In this document: positions 1,456-41,975 of the stretch, one piece after another | How positions within the stretch are numbered: the first letter of the stretch is position 1 | Layout: the number at the start of each line of letters is the position of its first letter | NCBI GenBank assembly: GCA_028023455.1 | Contig: JAQFVV010000007.1 | Location: 14,570,001-14,634,000, forward strand | DNA from: Epiperipatus broadwayi | Lineage: Eukaryota > Animalia > Onychophora | Length of the DNA stretch: 64,000 nucleotides | Direction: 5' to 3' | The notes under the pieces: generated by a model | What the model was told of the DNA's origin: nothing | Databases searched by the model: none | Seen by the model: only the letters and a program-made list of their open reading frames with translations | Program-made: the position numbers and the translations under genes

Positions 1456-4363
1456 CAGATGGTATGCAAATGTATATATAATAATAAACATATAAGTTTA
1501 AATAATGTGATGTGTTTTTAGTTTAAAATTTAAAAAATACTACATCCAAAAAAATCTAATTTAATATATAAAATCTTTTTTTTCAGTTGATTCATATAAA
1601 AGTTCAATGGATTCAATACTTAGCTATTGTTTTGAAAACTTCATCATATAAACAGCCGACTCGAAAATGAGCACTTTTAACAAACTTAGTTCTCTGTATC
1701 TGTATTCATTTTTTCAGAAGATTACTGCTCTTATTGCACCTTTTATATATATGCGTGTGTGTTTGTTATGTGTATACAATGAACCCCATTAAAAAGATGA
1801 GTGCTGACTAATTCTTTCTCCTGGCTGTCTACAGCACCATCTCTAAATTAATGAATGTTACAGCATGTCATGCATTAACTATTCTACACCAATGTCTTAA
1901 GCCACTAGCAAATCAGGTTCATGAATTATAATATGAAATGTGATGGTGTGTTTAACACTTCAATCCACAATGGAGCAATGGGAAAACATTCAATTTTATT
2001 TTAAATTGGACAAAAATGAAACATTTGAAATAATTTAAATTGTAATGGTAGTAAAGCCATGTTTTGCAAGAATGTTTTCATATGGTTTTCAAAATTATAT
2101 GATGGCAAGGAGAGGATTGAAGACAACTAACAAAGGGCATGAAACATACTGTAACATATCAAGTATTAACTCATGATCTAAACACATTACCATCTTAAAA
2201 GTTTTGTAGTGAATAGTTAAATTGTTTTATTAAACCATACATTCATTTGTGAATGGCACGACAGGCTTGGAGAAAAAATGTTACCTTTTCACTAGGATAA
2301 ATTATATATATGACCAAATTCTTATAAAAAAATGCAAAAAAAGTTCAAAAGCAGTCCATCAATACAAAGTATAAATTCAGGATACAAACAATTCTTAGAG
2401 CTCGGATTATGTTTTTAGAATCAATCTATGATTTTGTTGCTTCCATTATTAACCAGCAATATATTTTTGAAAATATAGTGATTCCCCTTAGCTTTAAAGT
2501 CATGTTTTAATGTCATTTTGTCTATTCCTATATTTTATAGTGTTAAGCCTTGATAATGTCGCCTATCAAATAAAATCTTGTACATTCATGTGACATTTGA
2601 AAATATCAAAGGGGTAAATTCAATTGACAGTTTCATACTGTTAATCAATTTGTTGTTTTTTAGTTTTCTTAGCTGGAACTTGAATTACAGATATTTACTT
2701 TTGGACCATCACTTCCACCACTGGATTTTCTGGTTTAGTGCAGTTGTAGAGTATGGTGGATTCTGAAGCACAAGGTTTGAGAATTGTTTTTTTTTGTTCA
2801 TCATTTTCAAGTTCTCAAATATCTTAATAACTTCCACACAATAAACAATTTGACTATTACCACTGTGTTTAATATCCAGGACTTGCTATTAATTTATATC
2901 AATGTTTTAAATAGAATTAAGCTGGCTAATGACATTATTTTAAGAATTTAAGAGTTTGTTTTTAAATAACTTTCTCATGTAGAAGATTCATTAGCTATTG
3001 ACATATTTGTGGTTATTATAAACATAAGTTTCATTTCATTTATGCATGCTAATATCTCTTCCCTTTCAATGGTTCTTCACTTTGTTAGGTTTGAAACAAG
3101 AACTTATTACTTCTTGATTTAATGGAAGTTGGGGTATTAATTTTTCTTTTGCCAATAGATCATGAAATGATCAAAATTTTGATATTATTTAATTTCTGGA
3201 TAAATTGTAGCCAGGGTGTTCATATAAAAAGGCATGTAACTTTCAAGTCTCGAAAGTAGCAGAAATGTTAGTGAATTCTGACCTTTAGCTAAAGACCATT
3301 ATTCTAACCATGCATGAGATCATGCACTGTTCATTGTAAAGTATATAAATAAATAAAATATTTATTTTTATAATGATTGCTTTTAAAAGATTTCAATAAT
3401 TTGCAACTCTGACTAACATTGTTTTCTTAATAATAAATAATCTGAATGCCTTTTAGAGTAATAACAACTATATTGATTTCATCTTAAGAAAAATACAACA
3501 GAAATAAGTTTTTACATATGTATTGCTTTTATGTCTCTCACTTAAATAATAACACGTTAAGTATTTTTTATAAACAATTTAAAGATGCAGATTTTGAAAA
3601 ACACAAGTTATATAAACCTTTTAAATTTAATTATATATATTTTAAAAAGTTTCGTCTTATTGTCCATTGGAAAATTTGAATTTTAACTCTTGAAATTCTG
3701 TTTGCATAACGCGATTTTCAATTTTCTTAGTACATCGCTATTCCATTTTTCTAAACACATAATCTTTTTGAATGTCCTTTACACTCAGCAAAGCCGTTAA
3801 TCATTTTTCACTTTTAGTTTTAATGATCTAAATTTCAATTTTAAAGTCACACACACACGCTTATACATATGCACTTAAAACAGAACAATTTGGCGGCATA
3901 CATTAAATTTGGGGTTTTGGTAAATAAATAGTTATCATTAAAGGTATATATATATATATCATCCCCACGCCTTAACCCTTCAGTAATATCCAGAGCTTTT
4001 TCTTTCATTTATGACATTCAAAATATTTGGTTCAACCACCTCAAATTATATTATTTTACAATATTTCTCATTTCTTAAGTGTCCAATTAACAATATACTT
4101 CTTTTTGAAGTCCTTTTTTAATGTATCCTTTGTTGTTACTTCTATGTCTTTTTCACCAGGAACTTTTGTGGTGCTTGCAGTCAGGGGATTATTTGTGGAT
4201 CTAGATATATGTATGATTAAAACAAATAAGTTTCATTAATTACTTCATTAATTTGTAATTAATAATACGCAGATGCGTTGCGGTGAAACTTTTCTAAATA
4301 ACAATTTATGTAGGCTTAGCGCTTTCAGAGTTTGCTTATTTTTAAAAAATACAATACTAATTC

Positions 4364-11300: not shown

Positions 11301-12109
11301 GTTCCCTTATGAAGGCCTATTTTATTATTACATACTTAAATGTTACAATGTTATTGCATGTCCAAAGTATGGATGTACTTAACCACATTGATCTCAGTAG
11401 TAGGTAAACTCCAAATGTTGCATCATTTTTTGCTATTTAAAAATATATAATATTAATTACAAAATGGAAAAATAAATCAGCACTGAAGTAAAAAAACACT
11501 TTGAGAGGAAATTGTCTGAATGAAATCTAGACAATAAATATTAAAGTATAAATTTAACACATTATTGGATGAGAACACTGGGTTTATTTGACAGGATCAC
11601 AAGATTAGACTTTTATCATGAATGTGAAAAGACATAGCATATCTTTTACATTGCAGATCTAGCAAGGATGTATCCAATTTTTTTTTCAACCCAAATTTTT
11701 AATCCTTCTCCCAATTTCCATCTTTAAGATCTCCAATCTATTCATCTCCTCTTTCAATTATAATGCTTAATGAAGTGATAATGAAGAAAAAAGTGAAAAA
11801 GTTAAAAAATAATATGACAGTTAATTATCTATGTAAACTTATTTTGTAACAATTATTACTACAAATAATTTTTGTGGTTTTTATTCATGAATATCATACT
11901 CCACTATATCACAATTCTTCACCAAAACTGAAATAAATAACTATCTCTGAATATGAATGCATTTTATGCATAGCCTCTTTTTAAGCAAACAAGACATTAA
12001 CACCTGAATATACATATCCATACTATCATCTCAATAACTTCCACTATACCATTTTCATGCAAGATAAGATCATCCCCAAAAGTAATATGGTGTGGAGCTT
12101 CTGGTGGTG

Positions 12110-18474: not shown

Positions 18475-19465
18475 GATTGTTTATCTTTTCTACATGTGTG
18501 TGGTTATGTATATCAGTTGTATAAGATAGTGTGTATAATTAATTGGTGGGTTCTTGAAGAACTGAATTCAAATCCCTATATTTATAATTAAGCTCCAGGT
18601 TTGTAAAGAGTGCCTGGTTTTCAAATATTTAAACTTTTTAAATACATTCAACTATTAATAATTGCACACAGATTAGTATATAACACAATGTTTAAAATGG
18701 TATTATTTTCTTCTTGCTCAGATGAGTCTAACAATGACCAAGATGACAATATAAACAGGTAGCCATGAAATCAAAGAAAACATATTATAGTGATCGCTCT
18801 AATTAGTTATGCAATTATATCTTTGATGAAATGACCTAATTGCTTTGAACATTATGTTAAATTTAGTATTCATAGTATTTAAAGTTCTACTTTAATTCCT
18901 ATACTAGTACTATCACTGAACTTGCCAAAATTACTCAAAGAAGAAAGAAAATTAACGCTATTTGAATTATATACTAATTTCTGTGTTATAATTAAGAGTT
19001 GTGTGTATTTGAAAAGTTTAAATAAAGTTTCTTTTTTTTTTTTAAAAAAAATTTAACAATTAAATTTACCGAGGATATATACTATGAGCATTCTTTTGGT
19101 TATCTGACATAACCAAGTAGATGTTTACAAATAATACCACAAAATTTTTCATTCTTTTTTTTTTAATCTTCAGAATCTACTTTTTGCAAATTCTTTTAAT
19201 TTTATTTTTAAAAATATTTCATAATATTTTTAATTATATATTTAACCATTTTCATAATCTAAGATAACAAAGAAATAAGCAAAATGCATAAAAATTACAA
19301 TTTTAATAAAATGAAAGAAATAGGAAAAAATAATAGAGAAAATAAAAAGGCCAATTCAAAAAAATTTTGAATAAAATCAATAGATAGAAAATGGCAAATA
19401 TATTGTATTACAAAAAAAAAATATAGCTAACAAAAAAGTATCACATTTACTATAAATCTCATATT

Positions 19466-21500
19466 CATCACCATCATTATCAACCATTATCAATCCACTG
19501 CAGTATGAAAGTCTCTCCAATTTCGATCCATCTTCTCTGATCTTTAGCTTCTCTTCTCTACATCATCCCTGCACACTTTCTTATTTCATCCTTCCATCTC
19601 ACATGTGGTCTCTTTCTGGGTCTTTTAAATCTCTTGAAATCCGATTTAAGATTTCAATTGTCCATGTATTATCATTTCTTCTAGCAATATGTCCATCCCA
19701 ACTCCATGTCAATCTTGTAATTTTTTCAATGAAGTTAGTAACACCTGCTTGTTCTCTTACCCATATATTGTGTTTTTGATTTTTTCTTGTTACTCTCAAC
19801 ATGCATCTCTCCAAACTTTTTTGAGTGGTCTGAAGTCTCTGTATTGCTCTTGTATCAAGTGTCCAATTCCCAGATCCATAAGTAAGAACTGGTAAAACAC
19901 ATTTATTAAAAAACCTTTCTTTTCAAACACGTAGGCATATTTCCTTTTAGTATCAAGTTATTTCTACCAAAAGCACTCCAACCAAGTTTAATTCTATGAT
20001 TAATTTCCTCTATTATGTTTCCATCTGTATTAATAATCTGACCAAGGTATTTGTAACTTCTAACTTCTTCTAACTCATCATAATTAATCTTTATTTTCAT
20101 ATTTTGAGAAAATCCATTAAACATTACTTTAATCTTTTTAACATTTATCTTTAGTCCTACTTTTCTACTTTCATCTGATAACTCCTGCAACACTTTCTGC
20201 AGCTCTAAAACATTATTTGCAAAAACAACTACATCATCTTCAAGCTCTAAATGACTTAAATAATCTCTATTTACTTTCACTTTTTTAGCTTCCCATTTTA
20301 ATCCACAAAATACTTCTTGCACCACTGCTGTAAAAAGTTTTGGAGATATGGACTCACCCTGTCTTACATCCTTCTCAATGTTGACTTTCCCAGTATCCTT
20401 ATGTAATCTAATTGTTACTGTTGCATTTTTATAAATATTCCTTAAAATATGACAATATCCTGGATCCAATACTTTAATCACTGAAGAAATATTTATAAAA
20501 TCAAATGCCTTTTCATAATCCACAAATCCAAGATATAATGGTAACTCATATTTATTTATCCTTTCTATAATTTCTCTCAATTCCTGGATATAATCTACTG
20601 TACTAAAACCACTTTTAAATCCTGCTTAAACAATATTTACAGTTGATATTCCTAATCTTCAGTGACATTCTAATGAATTAAAATTAGAACTTACAAATCA
20701 GTTTCAAGTATTAGTAGATTTTGAATATGATTCACATTTGAATGAAATTAATATGAAAATAACTGATATACTTTTAAAAACTGCAACAAAGATAGCTGAT
20801 AAAAAAAGCAGCAATTGACCAATAAAATTTTTACTGAGACTAGAGAATTTATGAAGAAAAGAGGGAGTATGAAGATATACAAAAATGATGCATTAAAAAG
20901 AATTGAATATCTCAAATTTTGTAAAATGGTGCGGAAAAGAGTTGAAAATGATATAAGAAAGTATAACTGTGAACTAGCAAGGAAAGCTGTAGAAGAGAAT
21001 AAAAGTCTCAATAGTATAAAACAACATTTTGGTATTCTGTAGGAAGTTTATATCTGCAATAAAAAAAAGATGAAATTAATACTAAAAAAAGAGATAACAT
21101 CATGAAATAGGTAGAAAACTTTTATCAAGAATTATATAGTAATAAAAAACAAGTACCTCCTATATCTATTACATCTTCTGAATTACCCAAAATTTTAAAT
21201 GAAGAAATGAGACATGCAATTAAATGTAAAAAAAAAAAGTAAAAGCTCCAGGTAATGATGAAATTATAATTGATATATTAAAAGAAGCAGGTGAAGAAAT
21301 ATAATTTTTTTTTAGCAAAGTTATATACCAAATGTCTAAATAATAAAGATGTACCAGATGATTGGAAGATTGCTGAATTAATATTAATATTTAAAAAAGG
21401 TGATAAAGAAGATATTAGAAATTACAGACCTATCAGCCTTTTATCAGTTTAACATAAAAAAATTACCAAGATAATTACAACTCGTCTACAGCGAGCATTG
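19466..21500 (-). mobile_element. RTE LINE copy with 5' inversion (twin-priming structure) and 12-bp TSD; decayed
   Basis: 19466-20627 (minus) matches the 3' 1.18 kb of the full-length element (28206-29385). 20628-21500 (plus) matches its 30279 to 29408 segment inverted. AAATCTCATATT flanks both ends (19454-19465 and 21501-21512). Contains frameshifts, stops and a broken RT motif (HLELEDD). Confidence 0.9.
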
Positions 21501-23135
21501 AAATCTCATATTACTATTTTGTATTTACACTCACTGTGCTAAAGTTTAAAGTAATTTCAGAATGGATTTTAAATATTAAGGATTAGACTAGAAGATCAAA
21601 TCATCTGTTACTTTCTATTATTGAGCTTGAATTCCAGAGTAATTAATCTTTTTTATTTTCTAAAGAAGTAATATAGTTCAGAAACCCTTGTTTTGAAGAT
21701 TTCTGACACTCACTGATAGTTTCATATTACTCAATAACTCATTTTATTAATTAAATACTCATTCACCAATTATTAGTAAGTTTACTAGATTAGCTACAAA
21801 TTGACTTATGCAAGTATATATATCTTGTTTGGGAAATACTCAATAACTTGTAGACAAATCTATTTATTTATGATTATGGAAGATAGTGCATTAAACATAA
21901 TATATAAGACCCATCCTACATATCCTGAAAAGAGTTCAATGACTATTGTACATGTACATGTTGTTATTTTATAGTTCTTTACATTTGAGGTCTGTTTGCA
22001 GCAGTGAAACCATTGGTTGTGTTTTAGAATTTATTTTTTGGCTTGTCTAATTGAGATAAGAATTTGGGATAATTTTGATTATGTATATCACAGGTATACA
22101 TTGAAAAGAATATAATGGTAAATGAAATCCAGTTTATTATGTAATTAGTAAAAAATTAGTAAATCAATTGATATTTTATAAAATCAAAACCCACACACGC
22201 GTATTTATTTTTCTCTTTGAGGATTTTATGAATTTGTACAAATGATTTTATATTTATAAATAAAAACAAGACTTAAAAAAAGAAGCATTATTTTTTAAAA
22301 CATGAAGTTTAATTATTTACTTTACTCAAAAGAAAATAATTAGTTATTAAACAAGTTTAACTTTAGCTTTCAAATAAAATTTAATTAAGATCTCGGTTTC
22401 ATATCCAATCAGTGGGATTAAATTTGTCGCACATGCGCATTATTGTCAAAAAATTTATTGAACCCTAAAAGAATTTATGAATTCTTTATTTAACTAGAAT
22501 TAATTGTAAAGTTGTATATACTTTGTATTATCAAAATTATACTTACAAAAATTTTATTAATATTGTATAAAGTAATAACACTCGTTATGACATGACTATA
22601 CAAAAAGAAGTTATAAATAAAAACATTGATACTATTAAATACAATATGGTGCATTTTTAGTGTGAGCATCTTTGTCAAAGATGATCCTTATACTCAATTA
22701 AAAGTGAAAACATGAAATTATGCAGTTAAACAGAAAAATGTGTATATTACAAAATACATCCAGGAACCTAATCGCTTTACACTTGTGATGAATAGAGAGA
22801 GACTGTTAATAGACAATTAAAGCAACATATAAAGATGTTAAAGTAGATCCTGTAGCAGCATTTTTCAAACTATACTCCTTGAAACACCGGTGTTATGTAG
22901 AAGATCAATAAAGTATTCCATGAAAATTAATATAACTCATATAATTTTACTACATTCATTTGAAACATGTTTGAACAGTGAGGCAGTAAGCATATGCCTA
23001 ACAATACTATGACATCAAGAGTTGTTAACAATCTGCCAAAATAAGTGAACATCCGCTTAACCAGATGAACAGATATTACAAATGACCTGTTTATTAAATA
23101 CATCATTGTATTATTTTGCTTTAAAATATAAGTTG

Positions 23136-27945: not shown

Positions 27946-28222
27946 ATATAAAATATTTGTTAGTTTTTATCAAAGAATCTTAAAGTTTTTATCATATCTG
28001 CTGACCCAACATATCTAAATAAAATTATTGTGGCTTGTTCTCATAAAAAAGTATTAAGCTTGAAGTCCTAAGAAAGAAACACAAAATATGAAAAAAATTT
28101 TAAAAAATTTTTTTTATTTTTATAAAGATATTAAAAAGTTAAAAAAAGCATCTTCAGCCTCACATTATTCTCATGACACTGTTACCAAAAATGAAAGTGT
28201 GGGATCATCATCATCATCATTA

Positions 28223-31210
28223 TCAACCATTATCAATCCACTGCAGGATGAAGGTCTCTCCAAGTTTAATCCATCTTCTCCGATCTTTAGCTTCTCTTCT
28301 CCACATCACCCCTACACATTTTCTTATTTCATCCATCCATCTTACATGTGGTCTCCTTCTGGGTCTTTTACAATCTCTTGGAATCCAGTTTAAAATTTCA
28401 ATTGTCCATCTATTATCATCTCTTCTAGCAATATGTCCAGCCCAACTCCACTTCAATCTTTTAATTTTTTCAATGAGGTCAGTAACACCTGTTTGTTCTC
28501 TTACCCATACATTGCGTTTTCGATCTCTTCTTGTTACTCCCAACATACATCTCTCCATACTTCTTTGAGTGGTCTGAAGTCTCTGTATTGATCTTCTATT
28601 AAGTGTCCAAGTCTCAGATCCATAAGTAAGAACTGGTAAAACACATTTGTTAAAAACCTTTCTTTTCAAACACATAGGCATATTTCCTTTTAATATCAAG
28701 TTATTTCTACCAAAAGCACTCCAACCAAGTTTAATTCTATGATTAATTTCCTCTATTATGTTTCCATCTGTATTAATAATCTGGCCAAGGTATTTGTAAC
28801 TCTTAACTTCTTCTAATTCATCATAATCAATCTTTATTTTCATATTTGGAGCAAATCGATTAAACATTACTTTAGTCTTTTTAACATTTATCTTCAGTCC
28901 TACTTTCCTACTTTCATCTGATAACTCCTGCAACATTTCCTGCAGCTCGGAAGCATTATTTGCAAAAACAACTACATCATCTGCGAAATCTAAATGACTT
29001 AAATAATCTCCATTTACTTTCACTCCTTTAGTTTCCCATTTTAATCCACAAAATACTTCTTGCAGCACTGCTGTAAAAAGTTTTGGAGATATGGAGTCAC
29101 CTTGTCTTACACCTTTCTCAATGTTGACTTTCCCAGTATCATTATGTAATCTAATTGTTGCTGTTGCATTTTTATAAATATTCTTTAAAATATGACAATA
29201 TCCTGGATCTATACCTTGATGATCCAATGCTTTAATCACTGAAGAAATGTTTATAGAATCAAATGCCTTTTCATAATCTACAAATCCAAAACATAATGAC
29301 AACTCATATTCATTTGTCCTTTCTATAACTTCTCTCAATACTTGAATATGATCTACTGTACTAAAACCACTTTTAAATCCAGCTTGTTCTCTTGGTTGGT
29401 GAAAATCCAAGGTTCTCTGTAGACGAGTTGTAATTATCTTGGTAAAAATTTTATATAAAACTGATAAAAGGCTGATAGGTCTGTAATTTCTAATATCTTC
29501 TTTATCACCTTTTTTAAATATTAATATTATTACTGCATTCTTCCAATCATCCGGTACATCTTTATCATTTAGACATTTGGTATATAACTTTGCTAATATT
29601 TTTTCTGTTTCTTCACCTGCTTCTTTTAATATATCAATTATAATTCCATCATTACCTGGAGCCTTTTCTTTTTTCATACATTTAATTGCATTTCTCACTT
29701 CTTCATTTAAAATTCTGGGCAATTCGGAAGATGTAATAGATATAGGAGGTACTTGTTCTTTATTACTATATAATTCTTGATAAAAATCTTCTACCAATTT
29801 CATAATGTCATCCCTCTTTTTAGTAATAATTCCATCTTTTTTCCTTATTGCAGATATAAATTTCCTACCAATACCAAAATGTTGTTTTACATTCTTAAGA
29901 CTTTTATTTTCTTCTACAGCTTTTCTTGCTAGTTCACAGTTATACTTTCTTATATCATTTTCAACTCTTTTCCGTACCATTTTACAAAATTCGAGATATT
30001 CAATTCTTTTTAATGCATCATTCTTGCATATCTTCATATTCCTTCTTTTCTTCATAAGTTCTCTAGTCTCAGTAGAAATTTTATTAGTCAATTGCTGCTT
30101 TTTTCTACCAGCTATCTTTGTTGCATTTTTTAAAAGTGTATCAGTTATTTTCATATTAATTTCATTCAAATCTGAATCATGTTCAAAATCTACTAATACT
30201 TGAAACCGATTTGTAAGTTCTAATTTAAATTCATTAGAATGTTTCTGAAGATTAGGAATATCAACTGTAAATATAGTTTTTCTTAATAATTTTTGTCTCT
30301 CTAGTTTTACATTAACATGTATCTTACCCCTTACTAATCGATGATCACTTCCTGTGTTAAATTTATTAAGAACATTACAATCTTGAAATATGTATTTCCT
30401 GTCAGTCAAAATATAATCCAATTCTGCTGTACCTTCATTTGGATGCTTCCATGTCCATTTCCTTCTAACATTTTTCTCAAAAAAAGAATTCATAATATAA
30501 AGTTTTTCCTTCTCTGCAAACTCCACAAGTCTATGTCCTCTCTCATTTCTATTACCATAACCAAAATTACCTACAACACTTTCATCTTTCATTTTTTTAC
30601 CAATTCTAGCATTAAAATCTCCCATAACAATTTTAAAATGTTGTTTACTCTGATCAAAAACCTTTTGTACATCCATATAAAAATCTTCTACTACTTCATC
30701 ACTGTGAGAACTTGTTGGGGCATAAACCTGAATTATCTGCATTTGATATCTGCTATTAAGTTGTATAACTAATCTTGCCACTCTGTCTGATACACCATCA
30801 ATCTCCACAATATTGTTCTTCCACTTTTTATTTATAATGAATCCTACTCCACTTGTATTTCCAATATTTGTGCCTTTATAATAGAGCATATGTCCACTTT
30901 TTAAATCAATTGTCTCTTCACCTTTTCTTCTAACTTCACAAAGTCCAATAATATCCCATTTAATATAAGAGAGCTCTTCTTCTAATTCTTGCAATCTTCC
31001 TTCACTTGAAAGTGATCTGCAGTTGTAAGTACCTAAATAAAAAGTCGGCATCAAATGGCAGCCTGGGTCCACCTCCAGGATATTCTTAGCACCCTCCGCC
31101 TTCGGCCACCAACCGCTGCCTTGGTTGGTGACTTTACAGCCTCCTGGGATTAAGGGCCATGCTTTATTTTTGTCTGTCATAATTGTATAATTGGGAAAAA
31201 TCTTTATCAT
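28223..31210 (-). CDS. RTE retrotransposon polyprotein: APE-like endonuclease plus reverse transcriptase (995 aa, uninterrupted)
   Basis: EN motifs [47 protein letters not shown] motifs [55 protein letters not shown]-terminal [10 protein letters not shown] and [12 protein letters not shown]. The true start codon is uncertain. Confidence 0.96.
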
Positions 31211-31336
31211 TTACACAAACATTCATTCTGCCTTATCAGGCACTGAGAAGAAAGACCATGGGGTTTCTTGATCTTAAACTCAGAGGTAAAAAGCCAATAA
31301 ACTCACCACGCTGGCTAATGCGTGTTGGTGAGCAGC

Positions 31337-31502
31337 CCATCCATGTTCGTATACTATATGAATAAACATATAGTAATAACAGCTGCAACGACAAGAACGT
31401 ATGGAGTGGACATTAGGAATTTGCCCTGCTCGGTTCCTTTAAGGCCTCCAAGAGGAATCAAAGGGTCTCCTTTCAGTTAATAGCAAACTCCTTTCTGCAG
31501 CC
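31337..31502 (-). ncRNA. HDV-like (CPEB3-type) self-cleaving ribozyme forming the element's 5' end
   Basis: P1 GGCUGCA (31502-31496) pairs with UGCAGCU (31387-31381), with the G1.U wobble. P2 CCA(C)UCCAU/AUGGAUGG. P3 ACG/CGU. L3 UUCUUGU. J1/4 GU. P4 UACUAUAUG/CAUAUAGUA. J4/2 CGAAC with the putative catalytic C at 31349. J1/2 is an 86-nt structured insert. Confidence 0.9.
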
Positions 31503-32022
31503 AAGTGTGGGATACTCATATTTAAAAATATTCTTAAACTATTTCTGAACATAAAGTGTATTCTTTTATGAAAGCTAAAGAAAATTTATTTACTTTATAT
31601 CAAGGATTGGCAAACGTTTTAACACAAAGAGCTATTTTTTACCTCCCCCCCCTCCTTCATTAAAGAGCTGCAAAAAAAAGAGATGAATATTCATGAAAAA
31701 TTCGAATTTCTGAATGGCTGTGCATATATTTGAATAGTTACTTTAGTAATAGAACATAAGAGAATCTGTATATATCCTAATGAAATTAAAAATACTTTTA
31801 AAACTAACTAAATAAAAACGAAATATTACTTTGATAGTTTGATTTATTCACAAATTTTTAATATTTAAATACTTATCATATACAATAATAAGACTAAATT
31901 CAAAAAACAATGTTATAATTTGCATTTTTCCTCTTCTAGAGTCATAACAATATTTATTCACAAATTAAAAGAGGAAATAAAAAATGTATCTATATATATC
32001 ATGATAAAAAATGCCTTTAAAG

Positions 32023-36716: not shown

Positions 36717-37640
36717 CAACATTGAGAAGAGTGTAAGATAGGGTGACTCCATATCTCCAAAACCTTTTACAGAAGTGCTGCAAGAAGTATTTTGTAGATT
36801 AAAACGGGAAGCTAAAGGAGTGACAATAAATGGAGATTATTTAAATCATTTACATTTTGCAGATGATGTAGTTGTTTTTGCAAATAATGCTTTAGAGATG
36901 CAGGAAATGTTGCAGGAGTTATCAGATGAAAGTAGGAAAGTAGGACTAAAAATAAATATTAGAAAGGCTAAAGTAATGTTTAATGGATTTTCTCAAAATA
37001 TAAAAAATAAAGATTGATTATGATGTATTAGAAGATGTTAACAGCTACAAATATCTTGGTCAGATTATTAATACATATAGGAACATAATGAATGAAATTA
37101 ATCATAGAATTAAACTTGGTTGGAGTGCTTTTGGTAGAAATAACTTGATACTAAAAGGAAATATGCTTATATGTTTGAAAAGAAAGGTTTTTTTTTTTAA
37201 TAAAAGTGTTTTACCAGTTCTTACTTATGAATCTGAGACTGGGATACTTAATAGAATAGCAATACAGAGACTTCAGACCACTCAAAGAAGTATGGTGAGA
37301 TGCATGTTGGGAGTAACAAGAAGAGATCGAAAATGCAATATATGGGTAAGAGAACAAACAGGTGTTACTGATCTCATTGAAAAAATTAAAAGACTGAAGT
37401 GGAGTTGGGCTAGACATATTGCTAGAAGAGATGATAATAGATGGACAGCTGAAATCTTAAACTGAATTCCAAGAGATTGTAAAAGACCTAAAAAGAGACC
37501 ACATGTGAGATGGATGGATAAAATAAGAACGTTTACAGGAATGATGTGGAGAAGAGAAGCTAAAGATCAGATAAGATGGATTGAACTTGGAGAGACCTTC
37601 ATCCTACAGTGGATTGATAATGGTTGGTGATGATGATGAT
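36717..37640 (+). mobile_element. 5'-truncated RTE copy (RT end plus tail), decayed
   Basis: Homologous to the 3' ~930 nt of the full-length element (HLHFADD, KWSWARHIAR). Ends GGATTGATAATGGTTGGTGATGATGATGAT. A TSD, if any, is eroded. Confidence 0.93.
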
Positions 37641-41594: not shown

Positions 41595-41975
41595 GTATAG
41601 GATGTTGCAGACGTCTCCATACATAAAAAAAATTGGAAAATAGTAGTTTAGTATACCTTTATTTATAAAATATTCATTACAAAATTGTATAAAATATTCT
41701 TTATATGTTACTGCTTTATACACACAAAGGATGTCTTCTCTCCATTCATGGCAAAGACATCTTTACACAAGTAATTTTATTTTTTTAGTAGATCCATGTT
41801 TCTAATATTTTTTGTACAAAATCACTATTAAATGACCTTAACACCTAAAAGTCAAATAAAGGAGAAATAGGAGATTTCACAGGGCTGCAGCAACCAATCC
41901 ACAAATATGGAAGCAATTGATATTAAATATAAATTTGGTCATTTTTTTTATGTATGAGGATGTTTAGAATATTCT
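41595..41975. mobile_element. Possible old MITE with degenerate terminal inverted repeats
   Basis: CAGACGTCTCCATACATAAAAAAAATT near 41608 versus the reverse complement of ATTTTTTTTATGTATGAGGATGTTTAG near 41941-41967. Boundaries are approximate. Confidence 0.35.

Follow-up and report, generated by a model that had tools for sequence, protein, structure and literature searches.

A predicted HDV-like ribozyme begins at the first base of an intact RTE retrotransposon in the onychophoran Epiperipatus broadwayi

This study examined the 5' end of a retrotransposon in the genome of the onychophoran Epiperipatus broadwayi. The window, that is, the whole analysed stretch of 64,000 nucleotides (contig JAQFVV010000007.1 of assembly GCA_028023455.1, positions 14,570,001 to 14,634,000 of the forward strand), was found to carry on its minus strand, from 31502 to 28206, a complete non-LTR retrotransposon (one without long terminal repeats) of the RTE clade, whose 5' untranslated region (UTR) opens with a sequence that can be drawn as a hepatitis delta virus-like (HDV-like) ribozyme. 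The element spans 3297 bp between two copies of the 11-mer ATCCCACACTT, which an exact-string search located exactly twice in the window, at 31513-31503 (the 5' copy) and at 28205-28195 (the 3' copy). This target-site duplication is perfect over 11 bp, and zero bases separate it from G+1 at 31502, as the first-pass annotation of this DNA had stated. Its length may be taken as 9-11 bp, since the initial AT could equally be part of the (ATG)n tail; the 5' junction is unaffected by this choice.

The element contains an open reading frame (ORF) of 995 aa (28223-31210, minus strand), which encodes an apurinic/apyrimidinic (AP) endonuclease and a reverse transcriptase, as seen from its Pfam domains (Exo_endo_phos, 1.9e-09; RVT_1, 9.2e-38) and from its alignment to relatives. 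The protein carries all residues that are invariant across a 17-protein alignment, including F-A-D-D at 742-745 and D289/H290. It is 59% identical to the protein P0001 over 99% of its length and aligns end to end with relatives of about 1000 aa. With the Bombyx entries D7F157 and D7F165, which are annotated as 'endonuclease-reverse transcriptase' and which we take to be the BmRTE set, it shares 42-44% identity (E of about 1e-256 to 1e-270). An exact-protein look-up of the ORF returned no record. The 3' UTR (28206-28222) is 17 nt long and, by direct reading, is made up of an (ATG)5 tail. The features expected of an RTE are thus present: one ORF of about 1000 aa that has the AP endonuclease at its N terminus and also encodes a reverse transcriptase, a size class of about 3.2-3.3 kb, a very short 3' UTR, a simple-repeat tail instead of poly(A) and a target-site duplication. 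Insect RTEs have TGA-type trinucleotide tails and the same pattern of size, single ORF, tail and duplication, and in lepidopteran RTEs the tails are TGA repeats and the duplications measure 10 bp (PMC2887409). As the protein groups with named RTE elements by identity, the element is, on sequence criteria, a member of the RTE clade.

In the first 168 nt of the element (31335-31502, minus strand), all parts of a nested double pseudoknot of the HDV type are present and follow one another as P1-J1/2-P2-P3-L3-P3'-P1'-J1/4-P4-J4/2-P2'. Direct reading verified each of the parts named in the first-pass annotation, namely P1 with its G1.U wobble, P2, P3, L3, J1/4, a P4 of 9 bp and J4/2. The predicted cut lies between 31503 and 31502, and the assignment also draws on a covariance model and on homologs, which are described below. 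P1 consists of 7 bp, in which the 5' strand GGCUGCA (31496-31502) pairs with the 3' strand UGCAGCU (31381-31387; direct reading and pairing test), closed by the G31502.U31381 wobble. P2 comprises 10 bp between 31411-31401, which reads GUCCA-C-UCCAU (GUCCACUCCAU) with one bulged C, and 31344-31335, which reads AUGGAUGGGC and was also supported by the pairing test. P3 (ACG/CGU, 31400-31398 with 31390-31388) encloses the loop L3, UUCUUGU (31397-31391), so that the hairpin as a whole occupies 31388-31400. J1/4 is GU (31379-31380), and its G31380 pairs with C31395 of L3 to form a one-pair P1.1, which is also C-G in those homologs that have letters in this column. The P4 hairpin (31350-31378) has 9 contiguous bp, a further 2 past a bulged U and the loop UUUAUU; alone it folds at -9.0 kcal/mol (z = -3.9 vs shuffles). 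J4/2 is CGAAC (31345-31349), and its first base, C31349, is the putative catalytic C, in agreement with the earlier proposal and with its conservation in the four sequences compared below. Finally, J1/2 forms a peripheral domain (P1.2; 31412-31495), a stable branched hairpin of 84 nt that is joined to P1 and P2 by 3-nt linkers and that folds alone at -29.5 kcal/mol (z = -3.2 vs shuffles).

An AT-rich window of 64 kb could supply enough short complementary segments for such a fold to be a chance drawing. A loose enumerating descriptor (P1 of 6-7 bp starting with G, P3 of 3 bp, L3 of 6-9 nt with a C, G in J1/4, C-N-R-A, and P2 of 5 bp) recovered the site and gave 2 matches in the window, compared with 1.4 expected in dinucleotide shuffles (0.4 with a 7-bp P1). 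The second match, with its G1 at 11617, is AT-rich and was judged spurious. Because chance yields about 1.4 descriptor matches per window, the drawing of the fold is not significant by itself. Two facts lend it significance: of about 128,000 possible positions, G+1 falls on the very one that the target-site duplication marks independently, and the homologs covary. Furthermore, P2 with 10 bp and P4 with 11 bp lie above the descriptor minimum, and the fold is present with compensatory changes in three homologs. These comparative data effectively refute a chance drawing, which we regard as almost inconceivable. A loose regular-expression descriptor was discarded, as it missed the true site through greedy matching and returned many false matches. 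A very permissive descriptor, run across all RTE loci, was uninformative except for flagging the locus L085, which is considered further below.

The comparative evidence comes from an alignment of four sequences, namely that of the window and those of three metagenome contigs of about 3.3 kb, L001, L002 and L210, which share one starred clade with the window's protein. The closest public proteins are 57-60% identical to the latter. All three contigs start with GGCUGCA, 0-5 nt from a (TA)n flank, and the order of parts in the element is the same as in the window. Standard pairs make up 89.7% of the cells in the alignment; in controls with the 3' partners displaced by 1-3 columns, the share is 36-46% (maximum 45.8%). 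Changes on both sides were found in 18 pairs, and 0 of 500 shuffles reached the observed covariation score. P2 is 100% paired in all four sequences and includes three compensatory pairs (A-U/G-C, U-A/C-G and A-U/U-A). In the basal stem of J1/2, 6 of 11 pairs are changed on both sides, and the inner stems covary too.

The junctions and loops of the core are likewise conserved. L3 follows the pattern UUCNNGU in all four sequences, being UUCUUGU in the window and UUCUCGU, UUCCCGU(U) and UUCACGU in the homologs, with the U at position 1 and the G at position 6 always kept. P3 is ACG/CGU in the window and ACC/GGU in L002 and L210. The C-G pair of P1.1 and the GU of J1/4 are kept in the three sequences with letters in those columns. 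The catalytic C and both A residues of J4/2 are invariant in all four sequences, the junction being CGAAC, but CCAAC in L210. The C-N-R-A pattern is therefore present throughout, and the G/C variation falls on the second base, a position that the family leaves free. The first pair of P1 is G.U in three sequences and, in L002, either G-C or a G.U in a shifted register. P4 is free in length, from 11 bp down to near nothing, as expected of a dispensable helix. The fold is thus supported by both sequence and covariation.

The position of the 5' boundary was also seen in contigs of four public runs, from four differently labelled organisms, which were placed on 28000-32000; these contigs are assembled, and their RNA or DNA nature is uncertain. 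Their summed word depth was 10^3-10^6 over the element, about 0-25 beyond 31618 (with one higher bin in the run X5) and 0 below 28134; immediately outside 31502, the depth of the family dropped from 10^4-10^5 to about 10. In at least 13 contigs of one run, the match breaks off at 31500-31503 and gives way to flanks that are unlike one another and often rich in (TA)n, and other copies of the family thus end at the same point. Together with the GGCUGCA starts of the three homologs, this bears out the expectation that other copies begin at the same G.

On this basis, we consider it very probable that the 5' UTR of this intact RTE opens with an HDV-like self-cleaving ribozyme, for which cleavage is predicted. 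A number of observations weigh against this interpretation. The search with an HDV-like model that the first-pass annotation had suggested, run here with the Rfam HDV families, gave no match in the window at the gathering score, nor in the region even at E <= 10. In P1, the helix that determines where the cut falls, 5 of 7 pairs never vary, there are zero compensatory changes and the seventh pair is open in L001; because the pairs barely vary, the support for P1 consists of complementarity and conservation, not of covariation. L001 also has a basal A.G mismatch in P3, and L002 is almost without P4. The alignment comprises only four sequences, and as these are related, their significance can be exaggerated by shuffle controls. 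In the nearest psyllid relatives, L083 (Diaphorina citri) and L209 (Cyamophila willieti), neither inspection by eye nor nhmmer nor the covariance model revealed a recognisable copy of the ribozyme. Lastly, the run contigs are silent on RNA 5' ends.

The silence of Rfam is probably explained by the 84-nt J1/2 insertion and by the pseudoknots, which lie outside the models; the test is a weak one, but it counts as an independent test that failed. We take the Rfam HDV-family models to include drz-Agam-1 and drz-Agam-2-2. On 16 related loci, the Rfam search at E <= 1 gave no HDV-family match, and the sole ribozyme match was a truncated twister in the locus L014. A covariance model of the core, with P2 and P3 nested, scored 85.7 bits at 31335-31411 of the window and had zero matches in 38 other RTE loci. 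Its second match in the window, at 41892-41965 (16.8 bits, E = 0.077), has no P3 or L3 and was judged to be a chance match or a decayed relic. The plus strand at 41883-41965 starts with GGGCUGCAG, followed by CAACCAAUCCAC, and resembles P1 and the 5' strand of P2 without J1/2, P3 and L3. A protein-anchored metagenome scan yielded 80 RTE loci, none of which shared the ribozyme by nhmmer or by the covariance model. Scans of genome contigs and of viral contigs revealed no relatives, and a DNA pattern for the J4/2-P2 region gave chance matches only, in bacterial and viral contigs. Membership of the HDV-like class is accordingly based on structure, namely the topology, the G.U wobble, P1.1 and J4/2, and not on a match to the Rfam models; self-cleavage is a prediction from these features.

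The same structural data could be read as a conserved structured RNA that does not cleave and that serves, for example, as a platform for translation initiation or protein binding. In that case, an internal promoter or initiator at GGCUGCA would define where the element starts, and the HDV topology would be a relic or a mimic. The covariation backs P2, the J1/2 stem and a hairpin downstream of the ribozyme and is silent on catalysis, and a P1 without compensatory change also fits a conserved initiator sequence. A GGCUGCAAAAGG-like string is present inside the 5' regions of the distant RTEs L012 and L014, which lack the fold, and the silence of the Rfam HDV models would also be in line with a non-cleaving RNA. 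However, the positions needed for catalysis only, that is, the C and the A-A of J4/2 and the U..C..G of L3, are invariant despite protein identities of 57-60%. The G of J1/4 and the G1.U wobble are retained in three of the four sequences, and RTE ribozymes have been reported to cut at the first base (PMC3774820). We consider a non-cleaving RNA improbable and prefer a self-cleaving ribozyme.

If the RNA cleaves itself as predicted, the following mechanism can be proposed. The element would be carried in a longer RNA begun at an upstream host or transposon promoter. This RNA would fold into the nested double pseudoknot, in which the 84-nt J1/2 hairpin would clamp P1 and P2 at their outer ends. 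In drz-Agam-2-1, a stable J1/2 helix raises the rate nearly 1000-fold by pinching P1 and P2 together (PMC4908430). Cleavage 5' of G31502 would be catalysed by C31349 of J4/2, with Mg2+ held by the U...G of L3 and by the G1.U wobble; these roles of the L3 and J1/4 bases (P1.1 and the metal-holding U...G) are taken from PMC4836649. The product would be an RNA with a 5'-OH that starts at the first base of the element and is free of flanking sequence. Upon re-insertion, full-length target-primed reverse transcription would copy the ribozyme into the new site. We propose that the duplication abuts G+1 because reverse transcription runs to the end of the cleaved RNA, and that each full-length daughter would therefore again start with the ribozyme. 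More speculatively, the ribozyme or the downstream hairpin may aid cap-independent translation or the binding of the element's protein. Similar schemes have been described: HDV-like ribozymes head RTE and baggins elements without promoters of their own (PMC6765202), the read-through release model has been published for RTE and baggins ribozymes (PMC6765202, PMC3774820), and cleavage exactly at the 5' junction has been reported for ribozymes of the RTE, R4 and L1 clades (PMC3774820).

The occurrence of HDV-like ribozymes at the 5' ends of non-LTR elements, which the first-pass annotation had given as established, is indeed documented for RTE and R2 (PMC6765202, PMC3774820). The closest case is the drz-Agam-2 family of Anopheles, HDV-like ribozymes at RTE 5' ends (Webb et al. 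2009 and Ruminski et al. 2011, as cited in PMC6765202, PMC3774820 and PMC4908430). The window ribozyme resembles these in the clade of the element, in its extreme 5' position, in a cut, here predicted, that defines the first base of the element, in its large structured J1/2 (P1.2) domain and in the presumed role in read-through release. In contrast to the drz-Agam families, it is unmatched by the Rfam HDV models, its core junctions are similar to those of CPEB3 and its host genome has about 27% GC.

With regard to the core, the earlier suggestion that L3, J1/4 and J4/2 resemble those of the mammalian CPEB3 ribozyme is supported by published work. The J4/2 of CPEB3 is CGAA and its L3 is UUCACGU, the sequence found in L210. 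The L3 bases named for CPEB3, U20, C22, A23 and G25, are consistent with the latter (PMC4836649). According to the same source, the P1.1 of CPEB3 consists of one G-C and one U-U, and its 4-nt J4/2 contains the catalytic C57 with the neighbours G58, A59 and A60 (PMC4836649). The window likewise shows a P1.1 of C31395-G31380 and U31396.U31379, a 7-nt L3 of the form UUCNNGU, a GU in J1/4 and CGAA in J4/2. The CPEB3 ribozyme is, however, a 68-nt, intronic, single-copy sequence with a J1/2 of a few nucleotides and no transposon, whereas the window ribozyme has an 84-nt J1/2, a 10-bp P2 and an extra C after CGAA. The likeness to CPEB3 is a resemblance, which need not mean homology.

The ribozyme at the 5' end of R2 (Eickbush & Eickbush 2010, as given in PMC3774820) likewise folds as an HDV-like double pseudoknot, which takes up roughly the first 170-180 nt of a non-LTR element. 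It serves to process a co-transcript, and its cut in Drosophila R2 falls exactly on the 5' junction. R2 differs in being specific for a site in the 28S rDNA, in its restriction-like endonuclease and in its transcription by Pol I, and for many species its P1 draws on 28S sequence and the cut lies upstream of the junction. The window element, in contrast, encodes an AP endonuclease, and its insertions are dispersed and show target-site duplications. Another ribozyme class, the twister variants, is found at the 5' ends of RTEs such as Perere-3 of Schistosoma (PMC8501958; de la Pena 2020, PMC7761336). These elements share with that of the window the clade and a 5' self-cleaving RNA in place of a promoter-defined start, predicted in our case. 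They differ in ribozyme class and fold, and the window's element has no twister match.

Concerning the family to which the element belongs, thousands of run contigs match the window's copy at 99% or more, a sign of recent activity of the family as judged from the sequences. It is about an even chance that the ribozyme works in the family while the window's own copy is transcriptionally silent. The depth in its unique flank is about 0-25 in the runs, and no promoter or host transcription unit was identified upstream, both of which would fit a silent copy. The perfect duplication, the open ORF, the intact state of all helices and the recent activity indicated by the near-identical contigs stand against it. 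The question concerns the activity of the locus, not the identity of the sequence.

The family is extremely abundant in the runs, where even a small run contains its contigs by the tens of thousands (X1-X14 vs 28000-32000 / 30900-31900). Copies with 90-99+% identity occur under the labels of at least nine different organisms, in runs that stem from five studies. Such an occurrence would mean either that a group of species has a recently active family in common or that the family spread horizontally. The window itself contains truncated copies of the same family with about 91% identity, at 19465-21508 and 36717-37640, which are 5'-truncated in the usual non-LTR pattern. In the former, 19465-20627 (minus strand) corresponds to element positions 2118-3295 and abuts positions 1224-2103, inverted at 20628-21508 (plus strand), a 5'-inversion like those ascribed to twin priming in L1. 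A 224-aa ORF with RVT_1 at 19906-20580 is part of this fragment. The window contains no long ORF of the host. L001, L002 and L210 sit in (TA)n microsatellites and end in (GAT)n, and (TA)n-like sequence is also found at the 5' flanks of many copies in the window's family. These features point to TA repeats as preferred targets and to a seeding of trinucleotide microsatellites by the elements, as in lepidopteran RTEs. Several of these TA-embedded eukaryotic contigs are catalogued as gut or environmental metagenome sequence and as parts of bacterial metagenome-assembled genomes.

A conserved hairpin lies 2 nt past the ribozyme (31302-31332, minus strand). It comprises a 6-bp outer stem, an AAC bulge, a 4-bp inner stem and a loop containing GCCAG, and it folds at -14.9 kcal/mol (z = -3.6 vs shuffles). 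All 11 RTE 5' UTRs that were aligned, drawn from several branches of this RTE group, retain the hairpin; 86% of cells are paired, compared with a maximum of 58% when slid, and 16 cells are changed on both sides. Homologs were located at L001:228-262, L002:247-277, L210:179-209, L003:256-287, L004:303-334, L084:396-425, L085:215-246, L083:712-747, L209:863-897 and L006:410-444. Across these hairpins, an AAC-type bulge and an inner stem of 3-4 bp are found, and AUU-GGCC often follows the hairpin, and the hairpin is also present in UTRs without a recognised ribozyme. It could be a protein-binding or translation element. It is also retained in the psyllid loci L083 and L209, which the protein tree places as the sister group of L001/L002; here, either the ribozyme was replaced or the copies were rearranged at their 5' ends. 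No recognisable copy of the window's ribozyme was found in L084-L086.

Two other loci carry different candidates at their 5' ends. In L014, a distant RTE with 37% protein identity, positions 114-168 match a truncated type-P1 twister (38.8 bits, E = 5.5e-05). This match is below the gathering score and its P2 stem-loop is missing; its 3' part reads GGCUGCAAAAGGAGG, similar to the first bases of the window's element. Truncated twisters in RTEs have been noted previously, and L014 fits this description (PMC7761336). In L085, which belongs to the P0006/7/9 clade, positions 76-215 can be drawn as an HDV-like candidate just past the (TA)n flank, with a P1 of ACCCCUCC/GGAGGGGU and no J1/2 insert. It has P3 GCC/GGC, L3 UCAACGG, a P4 domain of about 70 nt, J4/2 CCAAAU and P2 UUCAUU/AAUGAA, and it starts with A-U, not with G.U.

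Since the hairpin is shared and the L014 twister and the L085 candidate differ, a turnover of ribozyme units beside a more constant hairpin is suggested. The 5' ends of RTEs might accordingly be modular, combining a constant hairpin with an upstream self-cleaving unit that differs by lineage: an HDV-like ribozyme with a long J1/2 and a CPEB3-type core in the window's subclade, an HDV-like candidate of another topology in L085, none recognisable in psyllids and, outside the 11 UTRs compared for the hairpin, a truncated twister in L014. We hold this generalization to be rather doubtful. If it were true, the hairpin would be the constant functional core, acting for instance in protein binding or translation, and the ribozymes would be interchangeable cassettes. 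A CPEB3-type core in an invertebrate RTE would then also fit a retrotransposon origin of the mammalian CPEB3 ribozyme.

Ribozyme-defined 5' ends are established for RTE, R2, R4 and L1Tc elements. The class, its position at the first base of RTEs (since 2009-2011) and the structured J1/2 are known already, and the current understanding is unchanged. In keeping with the earlier remark that the sequence variant may be new, the present analysis adds a covariation- and boundary-backed lineage of HDV-like ribozymes, with an 84-nt J1/2 clamp and a CPEB3-type core, that is missed by the models of Rfam release 15. This lineage is useful for building better HDV-like search models and offers a natural test set for the "pinch" model of J1/2. 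The family is intact, very abundant and apparently recently active, and the finding is also useful for genome annotation: each full-length copy would carry a ribozyme.

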